64,000 nucleotides of DNA, from positions 62,001-126,000 of IMG/VR virus record IMGVR_UViG_3300028840_002431. One strand, given 5' to 3'. The notes beneath the pieces were generated by a model that worked only from the letters and a program-made list of their open reading frames with translations, ran no database searches and was not told the DNA's origin. How positions within the stretch are numbered: position 1 is the stretch's first letter; every line of letters begins with the position of its first letter. The position numbers and the translations under genes are program-made. Shown here in pieces: positions 4,222-38,142 of this stretch.

Positions 4222-4347
4222 GAGAGCGTTCGAGACGAGAAGCAGGATGTTTGCGATGGGAATCGAACCCACTACTTTCTGTGTGTAAAACAGACGCTCT
4301 ACCCTAAATGAGCTACGCTTGTATGCTTTCTCCGATTGATCGCTCTC
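4222..4347 (-). ncRNA. tRNA-chimeric RNA copy 1: D, anticodon (TAC) and T arms with the conserved stem domain replacing the acceptor stem
   Basis: Terminal stem GAGAGCG/CGCTCTC, CAATC..GCATACAAGC, TAGCTCA..GGTAGAGC, GGTTCGATTCC, ..CTGC..TCTCG. Confidence 0.85.
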
Positions 4348-4486
4348 GGTGGCAGACGTTGGACTCGAACCAACAATTTTGCTTGTGAGCACAGAAGTAT
4401 TGTTCTCTCGCGAGAACGAGTGTTAGGTGCTGATTGCGTACAAACCTACGTTATGATCGTAAGCGGGCCACCCGGCCCAGTCTGCC
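4348..4486 (-). ncRNA. tRNA-chimeric RNA copy 2: tRNA body (loop ATCATAA) with conserved domain in the variable region
   Basis: Acceptor GGCAGAC/GTCTGCC, insert CAGCAC..ACTCG TTCTC GCGA GAGAA CAAT..GTGCT CACAAGC, T arm GTTGG TTCGAGT CCAAC. Confidence 0.85.
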
Positions 4487-4495
4487 TAAAATCTT

Positions 4496-4635
4496 CCCGC
4501 ACCCGAGTCATGAACCTGTTTGATTGCTCGTTTTCTAGACGAGTGCCTAACCACTAGGCTATTTCCAATAGTTTTGGTTTGGAAAACAGGATTCGAACCT
4601 GTGTATGCATGTAAGATTCACCTGTTGGGTACGGG
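4496..4635 (-). ncRNA. tRNA-chimeric RNA copy 3: circularly permuted tRNA (T, acceptor, D, anticodon AGA) closed by the conserved domain
   Basis: CCCGTACC CAAC..TCT TACATGC, T arm, TTTCCAA-ACCAAAACTA-TTGGAAA, D arm, CTCGT CTAGAAA ACGAG, CAGG..ACTCG GGTGCGGG. Confidence 0.85.
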
Positions 4636-4636
4636 T

Positions 4637-4777
4637 TGGAGGGGCTATCGGGAGTCGAACCCTAAAACGCTTGTGAGGACCAGAAATATGGCTCCTTGCA
4701 GAGCCGAGAATCGATCCTGGGTTTTTGGTTTTTCCTCTTCGATAGAAAGGTGACGGACCGTCCGTCTGTATAGCCCC
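4637..4777 (-). ncRNA. tRNA-chimeric RNA copy 4: tRNA body (anticodon ATC) with conserved domain in the variable region, CCA end
   Basis: Acceptor GGGGCTAT/ATAGCCCC-TCCA, insert CAGGATC..TCTCG GCTCT GCAA GGAGC CATA..GGTCCT CACAAGC. Confidence 0.85.
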
Positions 4778-8899: not shown

Positions 8900-10783
8900 T
8901 CAAGCTGCCCAAGCGGGCTTGGTCAGCAACTCAGTGTTGAGGATGAGATCGACCAGCGATACTCTGGGAGCCGCCGCCTTTCTGGACGCCTTGCCCACCG
9001 GAGTAGCCGCGATCAGGTCTCTGATGGTGCGGGGAATCGCGTACGGGTCCGCGAAGATCCCCTCGTCGATCATGAAGCACGGGATACCGAGATTGGCCGC
9101 CGTGTCCTGGACCGCCGTGTAGCCGCGAGTGCCGCCTACCTTGAGGAACCCGAAAGCAACCGGGTTGAGGCCGGAAGACCTCACGGAATCGGAGAAGTCG
9201 TACGCCTCTTCGTCGCCCACGAAGATGAAGATCACGTCTTCATCGTCCTCAGGCTTGAAGGACTGGAGTACCCTGACGCCCGCTCCGTAATCGGTGCCGC
9301 CGCCCGCCCTGAAACCACGGAAAGCTTGCTCGACACCAGCCGACGAGTTCTGCTTGATCTTCACAACACGACCGGAGGTGTTGAACACCGACACGTGAGT
9401 CCGCTCCAGGGGGAACCCCTGTAGGAACTGGGTCAGGTACCGCTTAGCCGTCGGAATGGCCTTGTGCATGGAGGACGAAACGTCCACACAGAAGTAGATT
9501 CTCTGGCTATTGAGCACCTCTGCGACGGCCTTCTTGACAGCGTTGTCGGCCGCCTCCGACAGCTTCTCCTGGGTCTTCTTGGACTTGACACGCTGGGCGA
9601 TGTTGGCCGCCCGCATGTCTTCGGCCTCCTTGACCGCCGTCTCCCACCGAACCCGGATGTCCTGGACATCCAACAGTCCAAGCTCTTCCAGAGTCGGGGT
9701 CGCGATGATCAGGTCCTTGTTGGACAGGGACCCGACCTCGATGGCAGCCGCCATGACAGCCCTGGTCACACCGTCCTTGGGCAGAAGACCCACGACCCGC
9801 TTCCAGTTCGGCCGGTCCTGGGTGATCTTCTCGCAGATCTGCTCTTCGGTCAGACCCTCCCAGGATTCCGCCGCCTTGACCTCCTGGCCGATGGCGATGC
9901 TCCGGTGCCCCTCCTTGGACTGCGCTTGCTTCCAACGAAGGGTCTCGAAGAACTTGCCGGTGTTCGGCTTGTATCCGACCTTACGGGCCAGATCCATCAC
10001 CGTACGCCGGAAGCCCGCGTTGACCAGACCTTCCAGCATCTTGGGGTTCTCTTCCCGGTACCGTAGCCACTTCTCCACGGCCTTGGGCCAACGACCCAGG
10101 AACGGCTTACGAGCGGACTTACCGAAACCGAGATCCCGGTTGATCTTGGCGACGGCCGGTAGGCTCAGAACATCGTGGACCCTCATGAGCAACTTCGGGT
10201 TGAAGCTGACCTTGCCGTCCTTGCCCTTGGTGGTGATCAGGAACATGGCCTCGCCAACGTCACGGTAGTCCTCGTCGAGGAACGCGACCTTGCCCTTGTC
10301 CAGGACCGGATCACCCTTACGGGTTTGAACGAGCATGAAGGCTGCCAGGATGACCTTGAGGTCCCGGTGCTCCTGGCCGTATGCGTAGGAGGCCCACTTG
10401 GCCGCGAACTCGTTATCGAGATTCCAGACTTCCGCGACCTGCTTGTAGACCCACTCAACAACGTCCGGGTACAACCCGGCCGGTTGGTACTTGCCTACAA
10501 CCCGACGACCGTCCCGAACACGCCCGTCATTGCTGAGCTTGCCCAGCTTGACCTTGGTGCTCTTGCGGCCGACCTTACGCAATTCGTAAACGATCTTGTC
10601 GCCGTTCTCCTCTACGTGAGTGACCGGCAACCACTTAGAACCCACGACCGATCCGGTGTCGGTAACTGCGATACCAGCACGGTTGTGGACAGCATGGCCC
10701 GAGTGAGAGAGGACCGTCTGTAGGATTCTCTCAGCCGGTCCGAGATTCTCGTTTTGCATGTTATCCATCCGATCTGCCCGCAC
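8900..10783 (-). CDS. Ro60/TROVE-like protein: long basic helical region plus C-terminal vWA
   Basis: vWA motifs CVDVSSSM, GGGTDY, FIFVGDEE are clear. The TROVE assignment is inferred from architecture and segments KAVEKWL and DLARKVGYKP. Real start may be ATG 10768 or 10759. Confidence 0.65.
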   Translation of the reverse strand: MRADRMDNMQNENLGPAERILQTVLSHSGHAVHNRAGIAVTDTGSVVGSKWLPVTHVEENGDKIVYELRKVGRKSTKVKLGKLSNDGRVRDGRRVVGKYQPAGLYPDVVEWVYKQVAEVWNLDNEFAAKWASYAYGQEHRDLKVILAAFMLVQTRKGDPVLDKGKVAFLDEDYRDVGEAMFLITTKGKDGKVSFNPKLLMRVHDVLSLPAVAKINRDLGFGKSARKPFLGRWPKAVEKWLRYREENPKMLEGLVNAGFRRTVMDLARKVGYKPNTGKFFETLRWKQAQSKEGHRSIAIGQEVKAAESWEGLTEEQICEKITQDRPNWKRVVGLLPKDGVTRAVMAAAIEVGSLSNKDLIIATPTLEELGLLDVQDIRVRWETAVKEAEDMRAANIAQRVKSKKTQEKLSEAADNAVKKAVAEVLNSQRIYFCVDVSSSMHKAIPTAKRYLTQFLQGFPLERTHVSVFNTSGRVVKIKQNSSAGVEQAFRGFRAGGGTDYGAGVRVLQSFKPEDDEDVIFIFVGDEEAYDFSDSVRSSGLNPVAFGFLKVGGTRGYTAVQDTAANLGIPCFMIDEGIFADPYAIPRTIRDLIAATPVGKASRKAAAPRVSLVDLILNTELLTKPAWAA

Positions 10784-13085: not shown

Positions 13086-13172
13086 GGTGTCAGCGAGAGG
13101 AATCGAACCTCCACGGGATTGCTCCCACCAGATCCTTAGTCTGGCGCGTCTGCCTAGTTCCGCCACGCTGAC
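13086..13172 (-). tRNA. tRNA-Leu(AAG)
   Basis: Type II cloverleaf, loop CTAAGGA. Confidence 0.9.
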
Positions 13173-15072: not shown

Positions 15073-15160
15073 TGGCGGAGAGCAGAGGAGTCGAACCCCA
15101 CACCCGTGAAGGTGCCCATTGGTTAGCAACCAAGTTCCGCGCCACGCGAATTTACTCTCC
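15073..15160 (-). tRNA. tRNA-Ser(GCT), 8/4 fold
   Basis: GGAGAGTA/TGCTCTCC 8-bp acceptor, 4-bp T stem, long variable arm, G73. Confidence 0.9.
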
Positions 15161-15186: not shown

Positions 15187-15579
15187 ATGGAAAAGATAGC
15201 CTCACCCAAAGAGCTTGCCGCTGAACTCCAACGGATTCTGGCCTACACGGAAACCGCCGAACCCAGCCGTGAGAAAATAGCCGCCGACCTGAAGGCTCTG
15301 GCCAACAGGGTGGCTTTCCCAGCCCGTAGAACCAAAGGCCCTTCGTTCGGCCAAGAGGGGTGGGAACCAAAATATGACAAGAGCCTCCGGAGAAAATACC
15401 AGAGGGCCATGCGAGGAGTTGACGCCTATCTCGAAAAAGCTCGTGAACTAGCCATCGAGATGGGTTTCCCGCCCGACGAAAAAGAGGGGCAGGATATGAA
15501 TCCAGCCGGGGCGCTTTGGGAAGCAATGGGAAAGGCCCACCGTACCTACAAGTGTAACATCTACTGGATGATCGATTAG
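15187..15579 (+). CDS. hypothetical protein
   Basis: 130-aa ORF filling the gap between two tRNAs. Confidence 0.7.
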   Translation: MEKIASPKELAAELQRILAYTETAEPSREKIAADLKALANRVAFPARRTKGPSFGQEGWEPKYDKSLRRKYQRAMRGVDAYLEKARELAIEMGFPPDEKEGQDMNPAGALWEAMGKAHRTYKCNIYWMID

Positions 15580-15664
15580 GCGGAGAGCAGAGGAGTCGAA
15601 CCCCAGGCCCGAAGGCTCGCACAGATTTCAAGTCTGGCCCCACACCGTTGCAGGTTTACTCTCC
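15579..15664 (-). tRNA. tRNA-Ser(TGA), 8/4 fold
   Basis: Loop CTTGAAA, 8-bp acceptor. Confidence 0.9.
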
Positions 15665-21274: not shown

Positions 21275-21518
21275 CGAGCTTGGCCGCAATCATGTCGATA
21301 ACGTGATGCATGTGCTTGAAAGTGACAACCTCTTCGTCCGTCAACTCGATCCCAAACTCATCCTCGAATTCCATAGAGGCGTCTACCATGTGGGAGGAAT
21401 CGACCCCAAGCTCCTTTTTTAAATGTTGTTCGGGCGTCGCTGTTGGCATGGCTTCCGGCTCGTCCGAGTAAGGAGTAAGAATCTCGACCACCTTCTGTAA
21501 AATTTCATCCTTGCTCAT
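21264..21518 (-). CDS. acyl carrier protein
   Basis: ELGVDS, MEFEDEFGIEL, ATGA overlap with KS. Confidence 0.92.
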   Translation of the reverse strand: MSKDEILQKVVEILTPYSDEPEAMPTATPEQHLKKELGVDSSHMVDASMEFEDEFGIELTDEEVVTFKHMHHVIDMIAAKLDGR

Positions 21519-22774
21519 CACTTCTCCCATTTGCGTAACACAATCACGCTGTTCACATCACCGAAGCCGAAGTTTGCTTTGAGTGCAATGTAGAGAGGCT
21601 TCTCCTCCGTTTGGTGGGGGACACGTTGATCCTCAATTTCGGGGATAGGATCTTCACAGTTTATCGAAGGGTGTATGAAATCGCCTCTCAACATGAGACA
21701 ACAAGCGGCGACCTCGATTCCTCCCGCTGCCTGAAGCGTGTGACCCAAGAGAGACTTCGTTGAATGTATGTAAGGGAGGTCGGAGTCCCCGTAAACCTCT
21801 CGCCAACACCGTACTTCCAGGGCGTCTGCCATCGTGCCAGTCAGATGGCCGTTTATGAAGCTGACATCGAGAGGTCTGATTTTCGCGTTGACGAGAGCCT
21901 TTCGTATACAACGCTGGACGGCGTTCAGGTTTGGGGCCGTCATGCTGCCGCCCTCCCGTTGCGCCCCGCAGTTCGTGTGGTGTCCTAACACTTCGGCGTA
22001 GATTCGAGCACCTCTACGTTCCGCGCTTTCGAGTCTTTCGAGCACCACAACACCAGCCCCGCCGCTGGGCACGAGGCCGGTTGCCGACTTGCTCATAGGG
22101 CGGCTCGCTTTATGAGGCTCGTCCTTGTAGCCTTTCGCTGTCACACGTACAGCGTCCAGGGCCGCCCAGGCGTAGGGTCCGCTGCCTTCGGCCCCGCCGC
22201 ACACCATCCTGTCGGCGTAGCCGTGTTGGATATGCCTCACACCATCCAGGATGGCCGCCAGCCCGGTAGCGCTCGTGGAACTGGCAGCGATTACCTTGTT
22301 CCCCAAACCTAGAAACTCAGCGGTACGGGCCACAATGCCTTCTGACAAGGTCCGGTGAACATGCTTTGCACCCAGCCTACGCACGTTGCCTGAGACAACG
22401 GCCGGGGACAAATCTTCCGCCAAAGCGCGATGTCCGGCATGGCTCCCTGAGCCGATTACGGCTCCTGAGTCCCAGTCAGGAGGCCCCTCTCCCAAAGGCG
22501 GGACCTCAAGCCCGGCGTCTTCCCATGCCTTGACCGCAGCGATACAACCATAACGGTTGACATCGTCCATGTAGGCCAACCGGTTTTTTGGGAAGTAGAC
22601 TTCCGCCAACGTGTCCGTGGCCTCCGGGATACCCGCCACTTGGCACCGGAAGTTTTCCAAATCTTCGTGATAGGCGATTCCGGACCGACCCTCCCGCAGA
22701 TTCTTTTCGAACTCGCCTAAAGTGTTACCAAGGGCGGTAACAACACCCAGCCCGGTGATCACGACCCTTTCCAT
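21518..22774 (-). CDS. FabF-like ketosynthase with active-site Cys replaced by Ser
   Basis: RVVITGLG, SSTSATG (normally xxACxxG), INGHLTGT, KSLLGH, NFGFG. Confidence 0.9.
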   Translation of the reverse strand: MERVVITGLGVVTALGNTLGEFEKNLREGRSGIAYHEDLENFRCQVAGIPEATDTLAEVYFPKNRLAYMDDVNRYGCIAAVKAWEDAGLEVPPLGEGPPDWDSGAVIGSGSHAGHRALAEDLSPAVVSGNVRRLGAKHVHRTLSEGIVARTAEFLGLGNKVIAASSTSATGLAAILDGVRHIQHGYADRMVCGGAEGSGPYAWAALDAVRVTAKGYKDEPHKASRPMSKSATGLVPSGGAGVVVLERLESAERRGARIYAEVLGHHTNCGAQREGGSMTAPNLNAVQRCIRKALVNAKIRPLDVSFINGHLTGTMADALEVRCWREVYGDSDLPYIHSTKSLLGHTLQAAGGIEVAACCLMLRGDFIHPSINCEDPIPEIEDQRVPHQTEEKPLYIALKANFGFGDVNSVIVLRKWEK

Positions 22775-25909: not shown

Positions 25910-26025
25910 GGGTATAATTGATTGGCCTTGAAACGCACAATCTGGCCTGATCGGGACCAGCACGGGTGCCCTGTGCATCTTCACCCTACCCGGCACCGAA
26001 TAGGGTACGTGTTCCAGGGCCAATC

Positions 26026-26405
26026 GGTGGAGTCGGCGGGAATCGAACCCGCGTCCGAAAGTGCTACTAATTACCACCTCTACGTGTGTAGCTCCATTTC
26101 GTGTCTTTGACAGGAACACCACCGGAGCGGGCAAAACCTGGGGGCGGCCTCACGGCTGCCACTTCCACCACTGGTCTAAACAACCTTGATTGAGGACGAC
26201 CAGAGACTGCGCCTCAACTGCACCGGCTAATCGTCGCCCCATCCAAAGACGCCGGATTCTCTGGCGGGACGCCCTAGGCCGCGATGGCCAGGGGTGCTGC
26301 GTTATCGTTCGCAGTTATGTTTGAGCGGCTTGATAACCCGGCCAGCCGATCAACCGGGACACGCAGTAGTAAATTCCACACCTCCGTCGAAACCTTTACG
26401 ACCCC
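26026..26405 (-). ncRNA. ssrA: tmRNA, one-piece, tag ANDNAAPLAIAA (26274..26312)
   Basis: 5' GGGGTCGTAAAGGTTTCGAC, 3' GGACGCGGGTTCGATTCCCGCCGACTCCACC, G3-U70, resume context ATAACT GCG. Confidence 0.96.
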
Positions 26406-29685: not shown

Positions 29686-29689
29686 TCTC

Positions 29690-29824
29690 TGGCGGGGCTT
29701 TGGGGAGTCGAACCCCAAAGAACGTGTAGACGTAACAAGGTTGCGTCCCTTTGTGTCAGATGCCTCTGACAGAGATGCGAGTATCGTGCGTCGAACAGTT
29801 TGGCGGCCTCCCGCCAAAAGCCCC
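29690..29824 (-). ncRNA. tRNA-chimeric RNA copy 7: conserved domain replaces the anticodon arm
   Basis: GGGGCTT/AAGCCCC-GCCA, GACG..ACTCG..CAACC..CGTC TACACG, T arm TGGGG TTCGACT CCCCA. Confidence 0.75.
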
Positions 29825-29831
29825 TAAGTCA

Positions 29832-29980
29832 GTCCGCGTTCGAGTCGATCGACCTGTTTAGCGTTTGCTTGTTCCGTAGACAAGTGCCTGTACCAATTCG
29901 GCTATATTCCCGATGTGGAAATAGTGGGACTCGAACCCACATAACGTATGCATGTAAGATCGTTCTGGATGAACGCGGAT
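29832..29980 (-). ncRNA. tRNA-chimeric RNA copy 8: circularly permuted tRNA (T, acceptor, D, anticodon ACG)
   Basis: TCCGCGTT CATCC..GATCT TACATGC, T arm, TATTTCC-ACATC-GGGAATA, D arm, CTTGT CTACGGA ACAAG, CAGGTCG..ACTCG AACGCGGA. Confidence 0.87.
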
Positions 29981-30136
29981 TGGTCGGGACCCTAGGATTC
30001 GAACCTAGATTGCTTGTAAGCGCCGTGGAGGTGTTTCCTACTTTTAGGGAGCTATCCCATATAAGAAACGAGTTACAGTGCTGGTCAGTATTGCTTCTGA
30101 TTTACGTTCAGAATGGATGCCATCTCCATGGTCCCG
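29981..30136 (-). ncRNA. tRNA-chimeric RNA copy 9: tRNA body (loop ACGTAAA) with conserved domain in the variable region, CCA
   Basis: CGGGACC/GGTCCCG-ACCA, CAGCAC..ACTCG TTTC..GAAA CACC..GCGCT TACAAGC. Confidence 0.82.
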
Positions 30137-30845: not shown

Positions 30846-30970
30846 GAACGTTCGAGTTGCTTGAGCAGATTGGTTAGCAAAATGGGATTCGAACCCATGC
30901 CTTTCCGGTTGATAGCCAGATGTCCTTCCACTGGACGATTCGCTTGTATGCTCTGACAGATTGAACGCCC
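30846..30970 (-). ncRNA. tRNA-chimeric RNA copy 10: D, anticodon (ATC) and T arms, conserved domain replaces the acceptor stem
   Basis: GGGCGTT CAATC..GAGCA TACAAGC, tRNA arms, CTGCTC..ACTCG AACGTTC. Confidence 0.87.
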
Positions 30971-31673: not shown

Positions 31674-31748
31674 TGGTAGGGTCGGTGGGAATCGAACCCA
31701 CAACCGTCGGGTTAAAAGCCCGCTGCTCTACCGTTGAGCCACGACCCC
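31674..31748 (-). tRNA. tRNA-Lys(TTT)
   Basis: Loop CTTTTAA, CCA. Confidence 0.93.
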
Positions 31749-31807
31749 ATAGTCGGGTTGCGGACTTTCGTTTTATTCGGCTCTTCATCGTTCTATCCTC
31801 TCTTTCT

Positions 31808-31896
31808 TGGTGGAGCGTGGTTGGAGTCGAACCACACACCCCGAAGGGAACGGGTTTACAGCCCGTCAGCTTCTACCGGAAGCCTAATCACGCTCC
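31808..31896 (-). tRNA. tRNA-Tyr(GTA), 8-bp acceptor
   Basis: GGAGCGTG/CACGCTCC-ACCA, loop CTGTAAA, variable arm. Confidence 0.85.
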
Positions 31897-31967
31897 ATGA
31901 GTTCGTGCGCGTGGAGCGTAAATAAGATTCGTGTAATGGTTTTCGTAACATTGTGAAAATTCTCCTT

Positions 31968-32041
31968 AAACGCCAAAGGCCACCTGGGTTTCCCTAGGCG
32001 GCCTTAGATCTCTCTCACGAGTAATAACTAATGGCCGCCTA
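31968..32041 (-). promoter_or_regulatory. attenuator: antiterminator strand (32033-32041) competing with terminator hairpin (31976-32005)
   Basis: TAGGCGGCC is complementary to GGCCGCCTA, the left arm of AAGGCCGCCTAGGGAAACCCAGGTGGCCTTTGGCGTTT. Confidence 0.7.
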
Positions 32042-32191
32042 TGTATCCACCTCCAAATTCTGGCGACTAATAAATTCGGAGGCGGGCATATGGGTCGTGA
32101 CGCAACCGAGATATGCGGCTCCCAGGACGCACCACGACGCCGCAAGTTTCGCTTGCTTGGCGCGTATTGATAATGTGGTCCGGGAAGTCAT
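32039..32191 (-). CDS. leader peptide (50 aa, all 20 amino acids)
   Basis: MTSRTTLSIRAKQAKLAASWCVLGAAYLGCVTTHMPASEFISRQNLEVDT*, stop codon overlaps the antiterminator strand. Confidence 0.6.
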   Translation of the reverse strand: MTSRTTLSIRAKQAKLAASWCVLGAAYLGCVTTHMPASEFISRQNLEVDT

Positions 32192-32366
32192 TGTCTTAAC
32201 TCACTGGTTACTCGTACAAGATATAAGTACACCTTGATGGGGTGTCTGGCAAGAGAAATCGACGGCCTTATGTTCTTTTTTATTCAGACCCGCGAAATAC
32301 CCAATGGTTATCGCTAGATGGCGTCAAGGACGCCTTGAGGCCGGTACATCCTTATATAGTAGGCCG

Positions 32367-32672
32367 TTACCTCGATAGCCGTTTGATGCTTTCCCGAACA
32401 GCTTCTCTAACTGCCTGGAGCAAGTAGATAGGCTTGGGGGTGGGCCGTAGTGGATCGCCGTTCGCATCGACATAGATGTCCAGACTCTCGCCAGTGTTGG
32501 ACTTGATCATCACCAAGTATTGATCCACCTCAAGCGGGCCGTTCCGTCTGTACGCGCCGAAGGAGTAGTCAGGGATGACCGTGACATCCAACTTGACGGA
32601 GAACTTATCTCGCTTGACGGGGGCGGCCTCTTTGGACAACGCCTCTTCAAAAGCCTTACGTGGTTTACCCAT
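32367..32672 (-). CDS. hypothetical protein (PRKAFE tag)
   Basis: GGAGG RBS, MGKPRKAFEEAL. Confidence 0.7.
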   Translation of the reverse strand: MGKPRKAFEEALSKEAAPVKRDKFSVKLDVTVIPDYSFGAYRRNGPLEVDQYLVMIKSNTGESLDIYVDANGDPLRPTPKPIYLLQAVREAVRESIKRLSR

Positions 32673-32681
32673 CTACGCCTC

Positions 32682-33716
32682 CTAAGTCACCGTGGCGTTG
32701 GCGGTCACGCTCGAATCGCCGTCCATAGTTGAGACGCCATCGTAAGCGACTTCAGCGTCCGCGCCCACAGTGGAGTCACCGGCCATGGTCGGAGCATCAC
32801 CGTACTTCACGGTGGCCCCAGCCGCAACGCTGGAAGCACCAGCCATGGTGGAACTCTCTTCATCGTATATGTCGATGTCCATCGCCGTGGACGAGTCGCC
32901 AGCCATGGTCGAAATCGCGTCAAAGACTACGGACCCGTCCGCACCGACGGTGGAGTCACCGGCCATAGTCGTGTCACCACCCAACACCAGACTGATGTCA
33001 GCGCCGACGGTGGACTCGCCCGGCATATTGGCGTTGCCCTGATGGATCTCTTCTTCTTCGACCACGGCTCCGGGGACGACCTCGAATGTTACAAGCCCGC
33101 CTACCTGGACCTTACCCACAGTGCCTGTGAACTCGGTGAGTCCCAGCCCACTCAAAGTGGTCCCAACATATAACACCGTGGGCGTGAACGGGTCCCACGA
33201 GGCCACGTCTGGATACCAGACCGCAACGTTATTGTTAAATTGGAAAGCCGCCTGATCGTCAGCGTAAACAAGATGATCGGCGTCCCACGCGAACTGGATC
33301 TCGATAGGAGTTCCTTCCAGGATGGGAGGCCCCATCACACCGCTCTTGCCTACAGAGAACCCCATATTGTCCACAATGATGCCGTAAGGGACGTTGTTGG
33401 GGTCCAAAGCCACTCCTAACAGCCGGGTTGGAGGGCTGCCGTCCGTGGTGGCCACCCCCAGAAAAGCCACGGCCTGATTACCACCGGGCGGCCCAGCGGT
33501 GCAGTTGATCCGCATGGTCCCCCGTCGGCCGGTAAGCCTGTACCCTCGTGGGCCAGCTAGTGAGTGTTGACCCACACCACGGGCCATGACAGAGCCACCG
33601 GGCAACTGTTGGGCGACAACGACGCCCCCATAAGTTCCCGGTCCCCCTCTCGGGGTGACTACGCTTACATCCATGATGTAGCCAGCGGGCGAAAGGATGG
33701 AAAATCCGTCTTGCAT
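32682..33716 (-). CDS. putative structural protein, beta-rich with C-terminal ~19-aa repeats
   Basis: About six copies of (S/T)TMAGDS(T/S)VGAD. Confidence 0.7.
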   Translation of the reverse strand: MQDGFSILSPAGYIMDVSVVTPRGGPGTYGGVVVAQQLPGGSVMARGVGQHSLAGPRGYRLTGRRGTMRINCTAGPPGGNQAVAFLGVATTDGSPPTRLLGVALDPNNVPYGIIVDNMGFSVGKSGVMGPPILEGTPIEIQFAWDADHLVYADDQAAFQFNNNVAVWYPDVASWDPFTPTVLYVGTTLSGLGLTEFTGTVGKVQVGGLVTFEVVPGAVVEEEEIHQGNANMPGESTVGADISLVLGGDTTMAGDSTVGADGSVVFDAISTMAGDSSTAMDIDIYDEESSTMAGASSVAAGATVKYGDAPTMAGDSTVGADAEVAYDGVSTMDGDSSVTANATVT

Positions 33717-35940: not shown

Positions 35941-36656
35941 CGTTCCTCCTGAGGCAATTCTTCCACGAGGCGCATAACTTCTTGTGCAACTTCTAACTCC
36001 CGGAGCCTTTCCCGGAGCTTAGGTGAGTGGGCTTGGATCGCTGGCATGGGGCCTTCTGACTCCAACCCCCACGCATCCCAGCCCCTGTATTGGAACCGGG
36101 CAAACAATTCGATACGAGGGATGTCTCCGAACAACTCCTCGATACGTTCCCTGGCCTCCGGAGGCTTCTCGGAATGCCGGGGCGGCCTAGGGGCGAAGAT
36201 CAGTTGTCCCTGGCTCTCCGTTTCGAGAGGCAACGTCCGCCCCTTTGCCTCAGTGGACCCTATAATAACCAACTCCGACTCTTCGGGAGGCTCCGTCGAA
36301 CCAACGATTACCAGTTCCGTTGTCGGCTTGACGAAGGAGGGTCTGACCCCCTGTCCTTTAATTATACGCCCGTCCTTCGTGGTCTTGATCCAGATGTAAC
36401 CAATACCACGATAGAAGAAGTCCCACATCCGCAGTAGGTCCACGGCTTCGTCCAGCTTGGGGCCGGTCGCCCACATGAAGATAACACCAGGAGGATCGAT
36501 AAGGCTGTGAACCGGGAGCTTCACAAGCTCGTCGAAGGGCATCATATTGAAGTGCTTGCCCGCCGCCTGATCCTTGTCCGGGTCTCCATAGTAATCCCAC
36601 GGAGGGTCCAGGTATATGAGCTTATAACGCCCGGCGAGCGACGCGAGTTCAATCAT
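35937..36656 (-). CDS. MT-A70 family adenine methyltransferase
   Basis: LIYLDPPW, HSEKP, RIELFAR, GWDAWG. Confidence 0.92.
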   Translation of the reverse strand: MIELASLAGRYKLIYLDPPWDYYGDPDKDQAAGKHFNMMPFDELVKLPVHSLIDPPGVIFMWATGPKLDEAVDLLRMWDFFYRGIGYIWIKTTKDGRIIKGQGVRPSFVKPTTELVIVGSTEPPEESELVIIGSTEAKGRTLPLETESQGQLIFAPRPPRHSEKPPEARERIEELFGDIPRIELFARFQYRGWDAWGLESEGPMPAIQAHSPKLRERLRELEVAQEVMRLVEELPQEER

Positions 36657-38142
36657 CTTGTTCCAAGTCGAACATCAATTCAAAAGCCTCTCGCTGAGAG
36701 GCTTCGTCGGCTTTGGTTTCCAGTTCCGGCTTCAAGGCCAACAAGCGTTTCCTCGCCAGCGCATGAGATTCTGGGTCCTTCTCGATACCTATGAAGTTAC
36801 ACCTAGAAGCGATGGCCGCCGCACACGTTGTCCCGGTTCCGCAGTAAGGGTCCAACACAACACCATCTACAGGGGTCACGAGTTTGACAAGCCACTCCAT
36901 GAGCTTCAACGGCTTCATGGTCGGGTGTTTGTTGTCTTCGTCGCCGGGCAACCATCCCCCACGCTCGCGTTTATTCACCTTAGCCGCGTACAGGAACGGC
37001 TCCTCAGGCTGGAACTGGCCGAAGTAATGAGGAGAGTCGGATTTCTGACGCTCCAACGCCTTGGCAGGGCACCCCTCCGCACACCTGTAGATAGGAAGCT
37101 CCTCCATGCCTTCGACGTCGCCGCGATGCTCAGAACTGTACGGATGCCCCGCTCCATCTCCAAACGGCTTCATGCCATCGTCAAAGCGGTTGATAACCGG
37201 AGCCTGTACTTTCTTATACCCTACGATCTTACAGCCGTCCGCATGTGTGACAACAAGGTTGGATGGCCAGCGCCCCTGATCCGTAAACGTAGCCCCAGTG
37301 CCGCGCCTGTAACCGGACCCGCCTTGTCCAACTCCCCACCCCTTTCCGTTTCTTACAGTACGAACTCCAGCCGTCGCTTGTCTTCGTCCGCTTGTTATTC
37401 TAGTGGCATCTATGTTGTATGCTCCGGTGCCGTGCGCCAATACATTGGAAGCCACCGTTGATTCTTCCAAAGGTTTCCGAAAAACGAGTATAGGCTCCCA
37501 CGATGGCTTGAGTGCCGTACCCCAACCCTCCCACGCCCATGCTTCTTTCGTCGCAGGGACTGTGATTGGAGCCTTGGACCAATCCATACGGTCACGCTCG
37601 TCGTGTCGCCCTTCTATCTCCCTCCAATTCTCGCTGATGGCGGCCGACGTACGCTTCTTCCCGTCGTATCTACCCCTAGGATCGTAGGTGCCCACCACCT
37701 GTCGTTTGGCCCCGGCCTCCTCATCGATGGCTTTTGATATATTACGGGACTTGGGGAAGCCTTGTCCGTAGACCCATTGCAGAACCGTACAGGCGAATTG
37801 CGAGGCCACTGTGTCCCGGTTCTCGAACCCAGCGGCTCTGATCCCCAAGGAGATGAGGTCAGAAGTCCGGGTCCCGCCAAAACTCAACAGGTGGCCGCCC
37901 GGTTTCAACACCCGGAAACACTCTTTCCACACGGAAACAGACGGGATGTGCCAGTCCCGGCCCATGAAATCCCCACCCGTATCGAGGTCGGAGTCTCCTG
38001 AGAGATAGGCTATAATCTCGTCGATTCCCGGTTCCCGGTCGCCAAGACCGTAAGGAGGATCGGTGACAATAGAGTCCACGGAAGCGTCCGGCAGCGTCCG
38101 GAGAACCTCTAGACACGTCCCCAGTAGAATCGAGTTCAACAC
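36649..38142 (-). CDS. N4/N6 DNA methyltransferase (beta class)
   Basis: VTDPPYG, HPTMKP, VLDPYCGTGTT. Confidence 0.93.
   Translation of the reverse strand: MLNSILLGTCLEVLRTLPDASVDSIVTDPPYGLGDREPGIDEIIAYLSGDSDLDTGGDFMGRDWHIPSVSVWKECFRVLKPGGHLLSFGGTRTSDLISLGIRAAGFENRDTVASQFACTVLQWVYGQGFPKSRNISKAIDEEAGAKRQVVGTYDPRGRYDGKKRTSAAISENWREIEGRHDERDRMDWSKAPITVPATKEAWAWEGWGTALKPSWEPILVFRKPLEESTVASNVLAHGTGAYNIDATRITSGRRQATAGVRTVRNGKGWGVGQGGSGYRRGTGATFTDQGRWPSNLVVTHADGCKIVGYKKVQAPVINRFDDGMKPFGDGAGHPYSSEHRGDVEGMEELPIYRCAEGCPAKALERQKSDSPHYFGQFQPEEPFLYAAKVNKRERGGWLPGDEDNKHPTMKPLKLMEWLVKLVTPVDGVVLDPYCGTGTTCAAAIASRCNFIGIEKDPESHALARKRLLALKPELETKADEASQREAFELMFDLEQDD

Follow-up and report, generated by a model that had tools for sequence, protein, structure and literature searches.

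Upstream of the tRNA gene block of a giant phage we found a 50-codon ORF that uses all 20 amino acids and whose stop codon opens one strand of a putative RNA switch. The same design was found in 16 other giant phages, suggesting that the phage probably reads its own translation speed to decide whether its tRNA genes are transcribed. The most likely interpretation, based on sequence comparison alone and without expression data, is a ribosome-mediated transcription attenuator that senses the supply of all charged tRNAs and gates the phage tRNA array.

A leader ORF with all 20 amino acids in front of the tRNA genes

The region analysed (the window) is a 64,000-nucleotide stretch of the IMG/VR virus record IMGVR_UViG_3300028840_002431. 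All the features described are located on the minus strand. A candidate sigma-70-type promoter is formed by a -35 hexamer TTGCCA (32252-32247), a 17-nt spacer and a -10 hexamer TACTTA (32229-32224), with an A-rich tract upstream (about 32278-32262). It was not listed by a consensus promoter scan because the second hexamer lacks the final T, but homologous leaders carry clearer TTGACN-16/18-TAnnnT promoters at the same relative place, often after an A-rich tract. The leader ORF (32191..32039) runs from ATG to TAG and has 50 sense codons with 39 distinct codons, including TTA and ATA. Seven amino acids (D, F, H, N, P, W, Y) occur exactly once. The TAG opens the segment TAGGCGGCC (32041-32033, segment A), a perfect 9-nt complement of GGCCGCCTA (32003-31995), which is the left arm of the GAAA-loop hairpin GGCCGCCTAGGG-AAA-CCCAGGTGGCC (32003-31978). 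The hairpin is followed by the interrupted U tract TTTGGCGTTT (31977-31968) and lies 82 nt before tRNA-Tyr (GTA) (31812..31894), the first of 44 tRNA genes. This gene is followed by tRNA-Lys(TTT), tRNA-Lys(CTT), tRNA-Asn and about 40 more tRNA genes on the same strand. The initial annotation, which had described the promoter, the pan-codon ORF and the complementarity between the stop region and the hairpin, was correct in every detail, as was its caveat that the U tract is short, which holds across the family.

All 20 amino acids together with at least 39 codons occur in 0.2% of random 50-codon frames, in none of 948 50-codon windows of the long ORFs of this phage and in 1 of 121 small ORFs of the window, which is this one. 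Taken alone, in a 64-kb window, this would be only suggestive. Actually, about 1% of the small ORFs (4 of 276) have all 20 amino acids, and simple scans flagged neither the promoter nor the terminator. However, the recurrence of the whole design in 16 independent and diverged genomes refutes a spurious ORF next to an ordinary hairpin.

Homologous leaders in other giant phages

A DNA similarity search of the region 31700-32700 against 50,697 phage records found nothing, and the flanking 101-aa and 344-aa proteins found only the same phage. A pattern built on the tail (GGCCTTTNGC..TTTNNGGAG) was too unspecific, with more than 120 unrelated terminator-plus-ribosome-site stretches, and a single metagenome scan with a tRNA-Tyr pattern gave only the same phage, a 253-kb phage without a leader and one short contig without a leader. 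However, through a conserved neighbouring protein and a hairpin pattern we found 16 homologous leaders in related phage contigs of 80-530 kb, each upstream of tRNA-Tyr/Lys/Lys. A covariance model scored exactly these 17 leaders at 73.8 bits or more in 850 kb of related loci, while the next best hit scored 37 bits.

The leader frame is open in 17/17 sequences, against 1/17 and 6/17 for the other two frames. Furthermore, conserved residues are encoded by different synonymous codons (Arg CGG/CGC/AGG/AGA, Ser TCN/AGC, Cys TGC/TGT, Val GTC/GTG), and in 45% of the identical-residue comparisons the codon differs, indicating that the ORF is translated, although translation itself has not been observed. 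Five of the ORFs were independently predicted by gene callers, and a search of 5.8 billion proteins with the peptide alignment returned only five of the family's own ORFs. On the other hand, the Shine-Dalgarno sequences before the leaders are weak or absent, although neighbouring genes have strong ones, and some 5' UTRs would be under 10 nt.

Interestingly, 16 of the 17 peptides (45-62 aa) contain all 20 amino acids and the exception lacks only Ile. The expected frequency is 0.4-6% per peptide from phage proteins or matched composition, and 1.5-4% even if 15-50% of the residues of an all-20 ancestor are kept. This composition is found in spite of peptide identities mostly of 15-40%, giving 15 clusters at 50% identity. 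Trp and Tyr are always single-copy. Synonymous codon diversity is also raised (Fisher p 3e-8), and when Lys is present twice both codons are used in 13/14 cases. The leader codons call on nearly every tRNA species that the phage encodes, 37/38 in the window and 35/39, 27/28, 31/32, 26/26 and 28/28 in other leaders for the tRNA species found in the available DNA, while same-length windows of phage genes reach about 73%.

One alternative is that the ORF encodes an ordinary small phage protein with its own, somewhat leaky, terminator, the tRNAs being made by constitutive read-through and the complementarity at the stop codon having no regulatory role. Some positions are indeed conserved, the hairpin is of a generic phage terminator type and small ORFs are common among phage tRNA genes. 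Actually, the related 253-kb phage has a 29-codon ORF, a strong terminator and then a separate promoter before tRNA-Tyr. We consider this unlikely. Peptide identity is only 10-52% except for one close pair, with no Pfam or other homologues found, and a folded micro-protein gives no reason for 16/17 members to keep all 20 amino acids and unusually diverse codons. It does not explain either why the best complement to the left arm of the terminator sits at the stop codon in 16/17, or why it covaries with that arm.

Alternative RNA structures around the stop codon

In all 17 leaders the transcript truncated before the right arm of the hairpin folds 8-16 pairs between segment A and the left arm, while masking a ribosome footprint (stop-16..stop+13) gives the terminator. 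The shared strand, segment A' (31992..32005, AAGGCCGCCTAGGG), pairs either with A (antiterminator) or with A'' (terminator). The latter is the right arm CCCAGGTGGCC (31988-31978), which follows the AAA loop (31991-31989) in the region 31976..31991, plus TT that pairs with the AA before A'. The two states have similar energies. In the window the antiterminator was predicted at -23.6 and the terminator at -21.8 kcal/mol (z-scores -5.4 and -3.2). The core of segment A starts between -11 and +3 nt from the stop codon in all 17, and the best complement to the left arm lies at -12..+4 in 16/17. A small hairpin (CTC-GTGA-GAG, 32012..32021) inside the 29-nt spacer between A and A' can form in both conformations, and every homologue has a small hairpin of different sequence in a spacer of 27-35 nt.

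Both alternative helices covary. The terminator helix is 89% paired over the 17 sequences, with 9 pairs changed on both sides, and 0/500 shuffles reached the observed values. C-to-U variants of A' in two of the homologues (L158 and L156) are matched by A in segment A but by G.U in A'', and in another (Rctr197k) all three strands change together. The pair count for the antiterminator (67% paired) is an underestimate, since MAFFT aligns segment A poorly where its offset from the stop differs, and we relied on the folds of the individual sequences. Pairing of the conserved tail with segment A or with the inner left arm is not conserved. Similarly, the minimum-energy fold of the full leader in the window pairs the GCGGC of A with a GCCGC inside the ORF, but the homologues show no conserved equivalent.

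A further hairpin, P1 (32047..32085), lies inside the 3' part of the ORF (14 bp, -20.6 kcal/mol, z-score -5.2) and is conserved in the family with compensatory changes. Its 3' arm carries a Shine-Dalgarno-like GGAGG 8 nt before the stop codon, and a GGAGG/GAGG/GGAG motif lies 5-17 nt before the stop in 14/17. The strong structure of the leader RNA (z-score -5.5), the conservation of P1 next to the switch and perhaps a loose resemblance of the sequence around GGAGGTGGGTAC to the T-box motif could indicate a switch operated by an RNA-binding ligand or by tRNA itself, the ORF being translated for another reason or only incidentally. This possibility also seems remote. No Rfam family matched at gathering scores in the window, nor did any, T-box included, at E up to 10 in 31850-32400. 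Outside P1 and the switch the leader RNA sequence is not conserved, while the reading frame, the amino-acid repertoire and the stop position are, and a ligand pocket would not need a stop codon locked to segment A.

The stem of the terminator is strong in the family (-22 to -40 kcal/mol). However, the U tract is interrupted in every member (family consensus TTYnnnCGTTT followed by purines) and its first bases pair with the GAA before the stem, so intrinsic termination may be weak or factor-dependent. The distance from the hairpin to tRNA-Tyr is 21, 23 and about 35 nt in three phages (L148, L159 and Rctr197k), leaving no room for a promoter of their own, so that the tRNAs must be read through the hairpin. 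In the window (82 nt) a second promoter is not excluded.

A putative sensor of the charged tRNA supply

In the mechanism that we propose, host RNA polymerase starts at the promoter and transcribes the leader. If no ribosome is on the stop codon when A' emerges, segment A would pair with A', helped by the small spacer hairpin that brings both strands together, the terminator could not form and the polymerase would run on into tRNA-Tyr, tRNA-Lys and the rest. If the ribosome has kept pace and sits on the stop codon its footprint would cover A, and A' would pair with A'', ending a share of the transcripts. Because the leader holds every amino acid, and codons read by nearly every phage tRNA species, a severe shortage of any one charged tRNA would delay the ribosome and turn the array on, while ample supply, including that from the phage's own tRNAs, would turn it down, resulting in a homeostatic feedback loop. 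Termination at the hairpin, the role of the ribosome and the direction of control are inferred. At equilibrium the full-length RNA prefers the terminator in most members, and the default "on" state rests on folding order, which was not measured. The most speculative step is that P1, with its GGAGG 5-11 nt before the stop, pauses the polymerase or holds the ribosome at the stop.

The initial annotation had interpreted this region as an attenuator acting as a general tRNA-damage sensor. The attenuator interpretation is supported, since each of its sequence-level predictions that could be checked by comparison was fulfilled in the 16 further phages, but tRNA damage is only one possible trigger, and amino-acid starvation or feedback from the phage's own tRNAs fit equally well. 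In 11/17 leaders all 20 amino acids are found in codons far enough upstream that a stalled ribosome leaves A free, but in six leaders one or two amino-acid types (Asp, Gln, or Trp and Tyr) occur only in the last codons, where a stalled ribosome would still cover A. In addition, one codon per amino acid gives low sensitivity and only severe shortage would register. Some positions (MTTR, W-C-V, NPE) are conserved beyond what a pure requirement for all 20 amino acids needs, and the peptide or its RNA may carry further functions. The same architecture could instead report general translation activity (ribosome availability, host shut-off, coupling of transcription and translation), or the peptide could stall the ribosome through its own sequence. 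W-C-V, N-P-E and the GGAGG before the stop are conserved as residues are in arrest peptides such as TnaC and SecM (see also PMC10941005). We find this option improbable, since a general-activity sensor needs no particular composition, yet all 20 amino acids, both Lys codons and near-complete coverage of the phage tRNA species are maintained, and the C-terminal residues vary (T, G, P, Q, A, E), unlike known arrest motifs.

It is somewhat more likely than not that a lineage of giant phages carries a universal aminoacyl-tRNA supply sensor, in which a slowdown at any codon, caused by starvation, tRNA cleavage by host defence, host shut-off or demand outrunning supply late in infection, is converted into transcription of the phage tRNA array. 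This would be the first attenuator known to control tRNA genes and the first leader peptide selected for completeness of composition instead of enrichment of one residue. Leader-peptide attenuation has been the textbook example of a sensor for one or a few amino acids controlling their own biosynthesis, and here the input would become the whole charged-tRNA pool and the output tRNA genes. It would also provide the first regulatory logic for the large tRNA arrays of giant phages, the role of which (codon supplementation, replacement of degraded host tRNAs, evasion of tRNA-cleaving defences) is debated, and would make that debate testable, as the conditions that open the switch reveal what the tRNAs are for. 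The element, of about 260 nt, is compact and portable and should report translational stress at any codon, and all 20 amino acids in about 50 codons is a simple criterion to search for similar sensors elsewhere.

Comparison with known systems

The genes that would be controlled here are a near-complete phage tRNA set plus a tmRNA. tRNAs are known targets of bacterial immune systems and some phages carry replacement tRNAs (PMC12409363), but in our literature searches we found no regulatory sensor described for such arrays, and to our knowledge an expression control has not been described.

The leader-peptide attenuators of enterobacterial amino-acid operons (trp, his, leu, thr, ilv, pheA) share with this element a promoter-proximal short ORF, a stop codon placed just before or within the 5' strand of an antiterminator, mutually exclusive antiterminator and terminator helices with one common strand, about 70-75 nt from the stop codon to the termination point (inferred here) and a hairpin in the leader that could synchronise polymerase and ribosome. 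However, here there is no run of codons for one amino acid, every amino acid being present and many exactly once, the leader has 45-62 codons and not 14-32, and the controlled genes are phage tRNA genes and not biosynthetic enzymes. There is no conserved region-1-type partner that sequesters segment A, so an untranslated leader should read through, whereas in trp it terminates. The U tract is interrupted and no Rfam leader family matches.

T-box riboswitches are also transcription attenuators that respond to tRNA charging, with a terminator/antiterminator pair in a leader of similar length (about 200-300 nt), but they bind one specific uncharged tRNA directly, need no translation and control aminoacyl-tRNA synthetase, biosynthesis and transporter genes. 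Here there is a conserved ORF, apparently translated, and no specifier-loop architecture. In the pyrBI attenuator and in regulatory arrest peptides (TnaC, SecM, Erm leaders) the position of a ribosome on a leader ORF also decides downstream transcription or translation, and the leader length is similar (44 codons in pyrBI). However, in pyrBI the ribosome physically blocks the terminator hairpin and the signal is UTP-dependent polymerase pausing, while arrest peptides stall through a conserved peptide motif plus a small molecule. Here the stop lies 21-39 nt before the terminator, outside the range in which a terminating ribosome suppresses a terminator (PMC4824070), and the conserved property is composition. 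Finally, the hairpin GCCGCC-nn-GGGAAACC-nn-GGCGGC is the same one that ends ordinary genes in dozens of unrelated phage contigs, but those are followed by an unbroken T run and have no upstream complementary segment at the stop codon of a leader, while here the tail is TTYnnnCGTTT and a competing strand is conserved.

The tRNA array and its leader region

The window is part of a 416.5-kb phage contig, IMGVR_UViG_3300028840_002431, and carries 44 tRNA genes and a tmRNA gene, all on the minus strand. The uppermost of them is tRNA-Tyr at 31894-31812. The array could be larger than 44 genes, since further tRNA-like T-arm/acceptor sequences that ARAGORN did not call were found at 4253-4318 (an Rfam tRNA hit), 4349-4375, 4569-4671, 15074-15106, 15579-15611, 29689-29723 and 29915-30010, all on the minus strand, and these may be extra, split or degenerate tRNA genes. 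Some anticodons are unusual, namely the ATC of one tRNA-Asp (30871-30945, minus strand) and the AAG (A at position 34) of two tRNA-Leu (2058-2148 and 13086-13172, minus strand). The tmRNA (26025-26405, minus strand; Rfam 136 bits) is embedded in the tRNA array and encodes the tag peptide ANDNAAPLAIAA, while a related phage (locus L143) has one with the tag ANYNGFAQAA. Inside or next to the tRNA region there are also genes for a beta-ketoacyl synthase (21518-22774, minus strand; PF00109/PF02801), a 627-aa VWA-domain protein conserved across the clade and useful as a marker (8900-10783, minus strand) and an N6/N4 DNA methylase (36649-38142, minus strand).

The leader lies in the 472-nt gap between a 101-codon gene (32672-32367) and tRNA-Tyr. 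Reading the minus strand, we found the candidate promoter hexamers TTGCCA (32252-32247) and TACTTA (32229-32224) separated by 17 nt, followed by an ATG at 32191 that opens a 50-codon frame ending in TAG at 32041-32039. The stop codon opens the segment TAGGCGGCC (32041-32033), which is followed by a 29-nt spacer holding a 3-bp GTGA-loop hairpin, by the hairpin GGCCGCCTAGGG-AAA-CCCAGGTGGCC (32003-31978) and by the tail TTTGGCGTTT (31977-31968). The hand counts of the initial annotation, 20 amino-acid types and 39 codons with TTA and ATA among them, are right, and the 9-nt complementarity between the stop-codon segment and the left arm of the hairpin is perfect. Folding gave -23.6 kcal/mol for the stop-codon segment paired to the left arm, -21.8 for the hairpin and -20.6 for a further 14-bp hairpin (P1, 32085-32047) inside the end of the ORF. 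The whole leader is unusually structured (z -5.5). Simple scans flagged neither the promoter nor the terminator.

A family of seventeen leaders

On its own the ORF is a 0.2-0.8% event, and among the 276 ORFs of 40-65 codons in the window four have all 20 amino acids. The single case is therefore only suggestive, and whether it was more than chance had to be settled by comparison. Direct searches with the DNA and with the neighbouring proteins found only the same phage. One of these neighbours, the 344-aa protein encoded upstream of the leader (ORF 32682-33716, minus strand), has no Pfam match and no homologue outside this phage, and contains three to four direct DNA repeats of about 38 nt (32757-33034, with about 60-nt spacing between some copies) that encode a repeated MAGDSTVGAD-like peptide. 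The conserved 627-aa VWA-domain protein further down the array led first to the GenBank record KX853510 (Virus Rctr197k, 57% identity) and then, as a two-sequence profile, to 27 loci of related 13-497 kb contigs. Interestingly, wherever the head of the tRNA array was captured (tRNA-Tyr, Lys-TTT, Lys-CTT), a small ORF followed by the same kind of hairpin lay upstream. In the public record of Rctr197k neither a tRNA-Tyr-like gene at the head of the array (about 190212-190298, minus strand, also missed by ARAGORN) nor the 52-codon leader ORF (about 190382-190540, minus strand) is annotated.

A hairpin pattern then recovered more members. It also showed that the hairpin GCCGCC-nn-GGGAAACC-nn-GGCGGC is in itself a common phage terminator, which followed by T6-7 recurs after capsid-type and other ordinary genes in dozens of unrelated contigs (loci L164-L227). 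The family now has 17 distinct members. A covariance model built from them scores exactly these 17 at 73.8-117 bits in 850 kb of related DNA, while the next hit scores 37 bits, so that membership was not chosen by composition and there is one module per phage, at the array head. A different layout was seen in a 253-kb phage (Ga0265297_10000130, locus L135, 5150-5480, plus strand) with a closely similar tRNA-Tyr at the head of its array. Here a 29-codon ORF with a good Shine-Dalgarno site is followed by a strong terminator with a clean T run and then by a TTGACA promoter directly before the tRNA, with no all-20 leader and no competing strand.

Coding signature of the leader ORF

The leader frame has no internal stop in 17/17 members, while the +1 and +2 frames are open in 1/17 and 6/17. 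The peptides are poorly conserved, mostly with 15-40% identity, with one close pair at 91% and 15 clusters at 50% identity. Where a residue is conserved it is encoded by different codons: Arg by CGG, CGC, AGG and AGA, Ser by TCC, TCG, TCA and AGC, Cys by TGC/TGT, Val by GTC/GTG and Gly by GGA/GGT/GGC. Actually, in 45% of all identical-residue comparisons the codon differs, which is the signature of selection on the amino acid and not on the RNA. Shine-Dalgarno sequences are weak or missing, what counts against efficient initiation, although some leaders would be nearly leaderless mRNAs. Gene callers had independently predicted five of the ORFs, without any annotation. Taken together, the comparison indicates that the ORF is translated.

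Selection on the amino acid and codon composition

Sixteen of the 17 peptides (45-62 aa) contain all 20 amino acids and the seventeenth lacks only Ile. The probability per peptide is 0.4-3.9% in windows of the phages' own proteins, 0.6-6.5% for matched composition and at most 9-40% for a perfectly uniform composition. If 15-50% of the residues of an all-20 ancestor are kept and the rest redrawn, the probability is 1.5-4%. Leaving out the window, which was the discovery case, 15 of 16 remains far beyond any of these values. Trp and Tyr occur exactly once in every leader, and Asp, Asn, Phe, His, Cys and Ile usually occur once, which explains why those positions are the conserved ones.

Given the peptide, synonymous codon diversity is higher than the codon usage of the phage predicts (mean z 1.5, combined p 3e-8). 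When Lys occurs twice it uses AAA and AAG in 13 of 14 cases, and Glu uses both codons in 7 of 8. Codons are also rarer than in phage genes. Under standard wobble rules, the leader of the window calls on 37 of the 38 phage tRNA species in the window, more than any of about 2,500 same-length windows of phage genes (mean 27). The same holds in the other phages for which enough of the array was recovered, with 35/39, 27/28, 31/32, 20/21, 26/26, 16/16, 18/19, 20/22 and 28/28.

Conservation of the putative switch

Three versions of each leader were folded. The transcript cut before the right arm forms 8-16 pairs between the stop-codon zone and the left arm in all 17, and with 30 nt around the stop masked, as a ribosome would do, the GAAA-loop hairpin forms, also in all 17. 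The two states have similar energies (-22 to -40 against -24 to -39 kcal/mol), although at equilibrium the full-length RNA prefers the terminator in most members. When a 12-nt window was slid along each leader, the best complement to the left arm was found between -12 and +4 nt of the stop codon in 16 of 17, out of about 200 positions each. The core of the segment starts at +2/+3 in eleven leaders and at -5 to -11 in six, always within a ribosome footprint at the stop. The leaders end in TAG in 10 of 17 cases (TAA 5, TGA 2), and in most of these the G of TAG is already part of the antiterminator strand. The spacer always holds a small hairpin of unrelated sequence and ends in GAA, which pairs with the first bases of the tail.

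The terminator helix is 89% paired, with nine pairs changed on both sides, and none of 500 shuffles and none of the slid controls comes near. P1 plus the antiterminator also exceed all shuffles, although MAFFT misplaces the segment in some rows. The most telling cases are the three phages whose shared strand differs from GGCCGCC. In two of them (loci L158 and L156) a C-to-U change is matched by A in the stop-codon segment (a Watson-Crick pair) and only by a G.U wobble in the right arm, while in Rctr197k all three strands change together.

Transcription of the array head

The hairpin ends 21 nt (L148), 23 nt (L159) and about 35 nt (Rctr197k) before tRNA-Tyr in three of the phages. In these there is no room for a separate promoter, so the array head is transcribed from the leader promoter through the hairpin. 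In the others the distance is 70-200 nt, and 82 nt in the window. Within this stretch of the window (31895-31967, minus strand), AAGGAG is followed 10 nt later by an ATG opening a 31-codon frame (31951..31856) that runs into the tRNA, but this ORF is not conserved in the homologues. In addition, CGCTCCA (about 31916-31910) repeats the 3' acceptor strand of tRNA-Tyr and can pair with its 5' strand TGGAGCG. The promoters themselves are recognisable upstream of most of the 17 leaders (TTGACN, 16-18 nt, TAnnnT, often after an A-rich tract).

Possible mechanism and comparison with known attenuators

The observation of the initial annotation is confirmed. Its interpretation, that complete translation of the leader shuts the array off while stalling at any depleted or cleaved host tRNA switches it on, is supported by the comparative evidence, although the mechanism is still inferred. 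The interrupted U tract, the weak ribosome-binding sites, the low sensitivity expected from single codons and the equilibrium preference for the terminator are weak points of this reading, and in six leaders one or two amino acids occur only in the last few codons. P1 ends 5-11 nt before the stop in most leaders and its 3' arm carries GGAGG or GAGG there, and one might speculate that it pauses the polymerase until the ribosome arrives or holds the ribosome at the stop. The physiological signal could be tRNA cleavage by host defences (tRNAs are known immune targets, PMC12409363), starvation, late-infection demand or feedback from the phage's own tRNAs. The use of rare codons served by phage tRNAs (TTA, ATA) fits feedback.

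We found no description of a leader containing all amino acids, or of attenuation controlling tRNA genes, in phages or bacteria, although prior description cannot be fully excluded because the full texts searched did not include most subscription journals. No Rfam family matches, and the element is not a member of any Rfam leader family or of the T-box family. The stop lies 21-39 nt before the left arm of the terminator, beyond the distance at which a terminating ribosome itself suppresses a terminator (PMC4824070). The element would work like a leader-peptide attenuator and has the architecture of one, and its anatomy appears to be that of the trp/his class, with two differences. First, no conserved upstream partner sequesters the stop-codon segment, and an untranslated or stalled leader should therefore read through, while only timely arrival of the ribosome at the stop should terminate. 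Second, there is no run of regulatory codons, and the leader samples everything instead of one amino acid.
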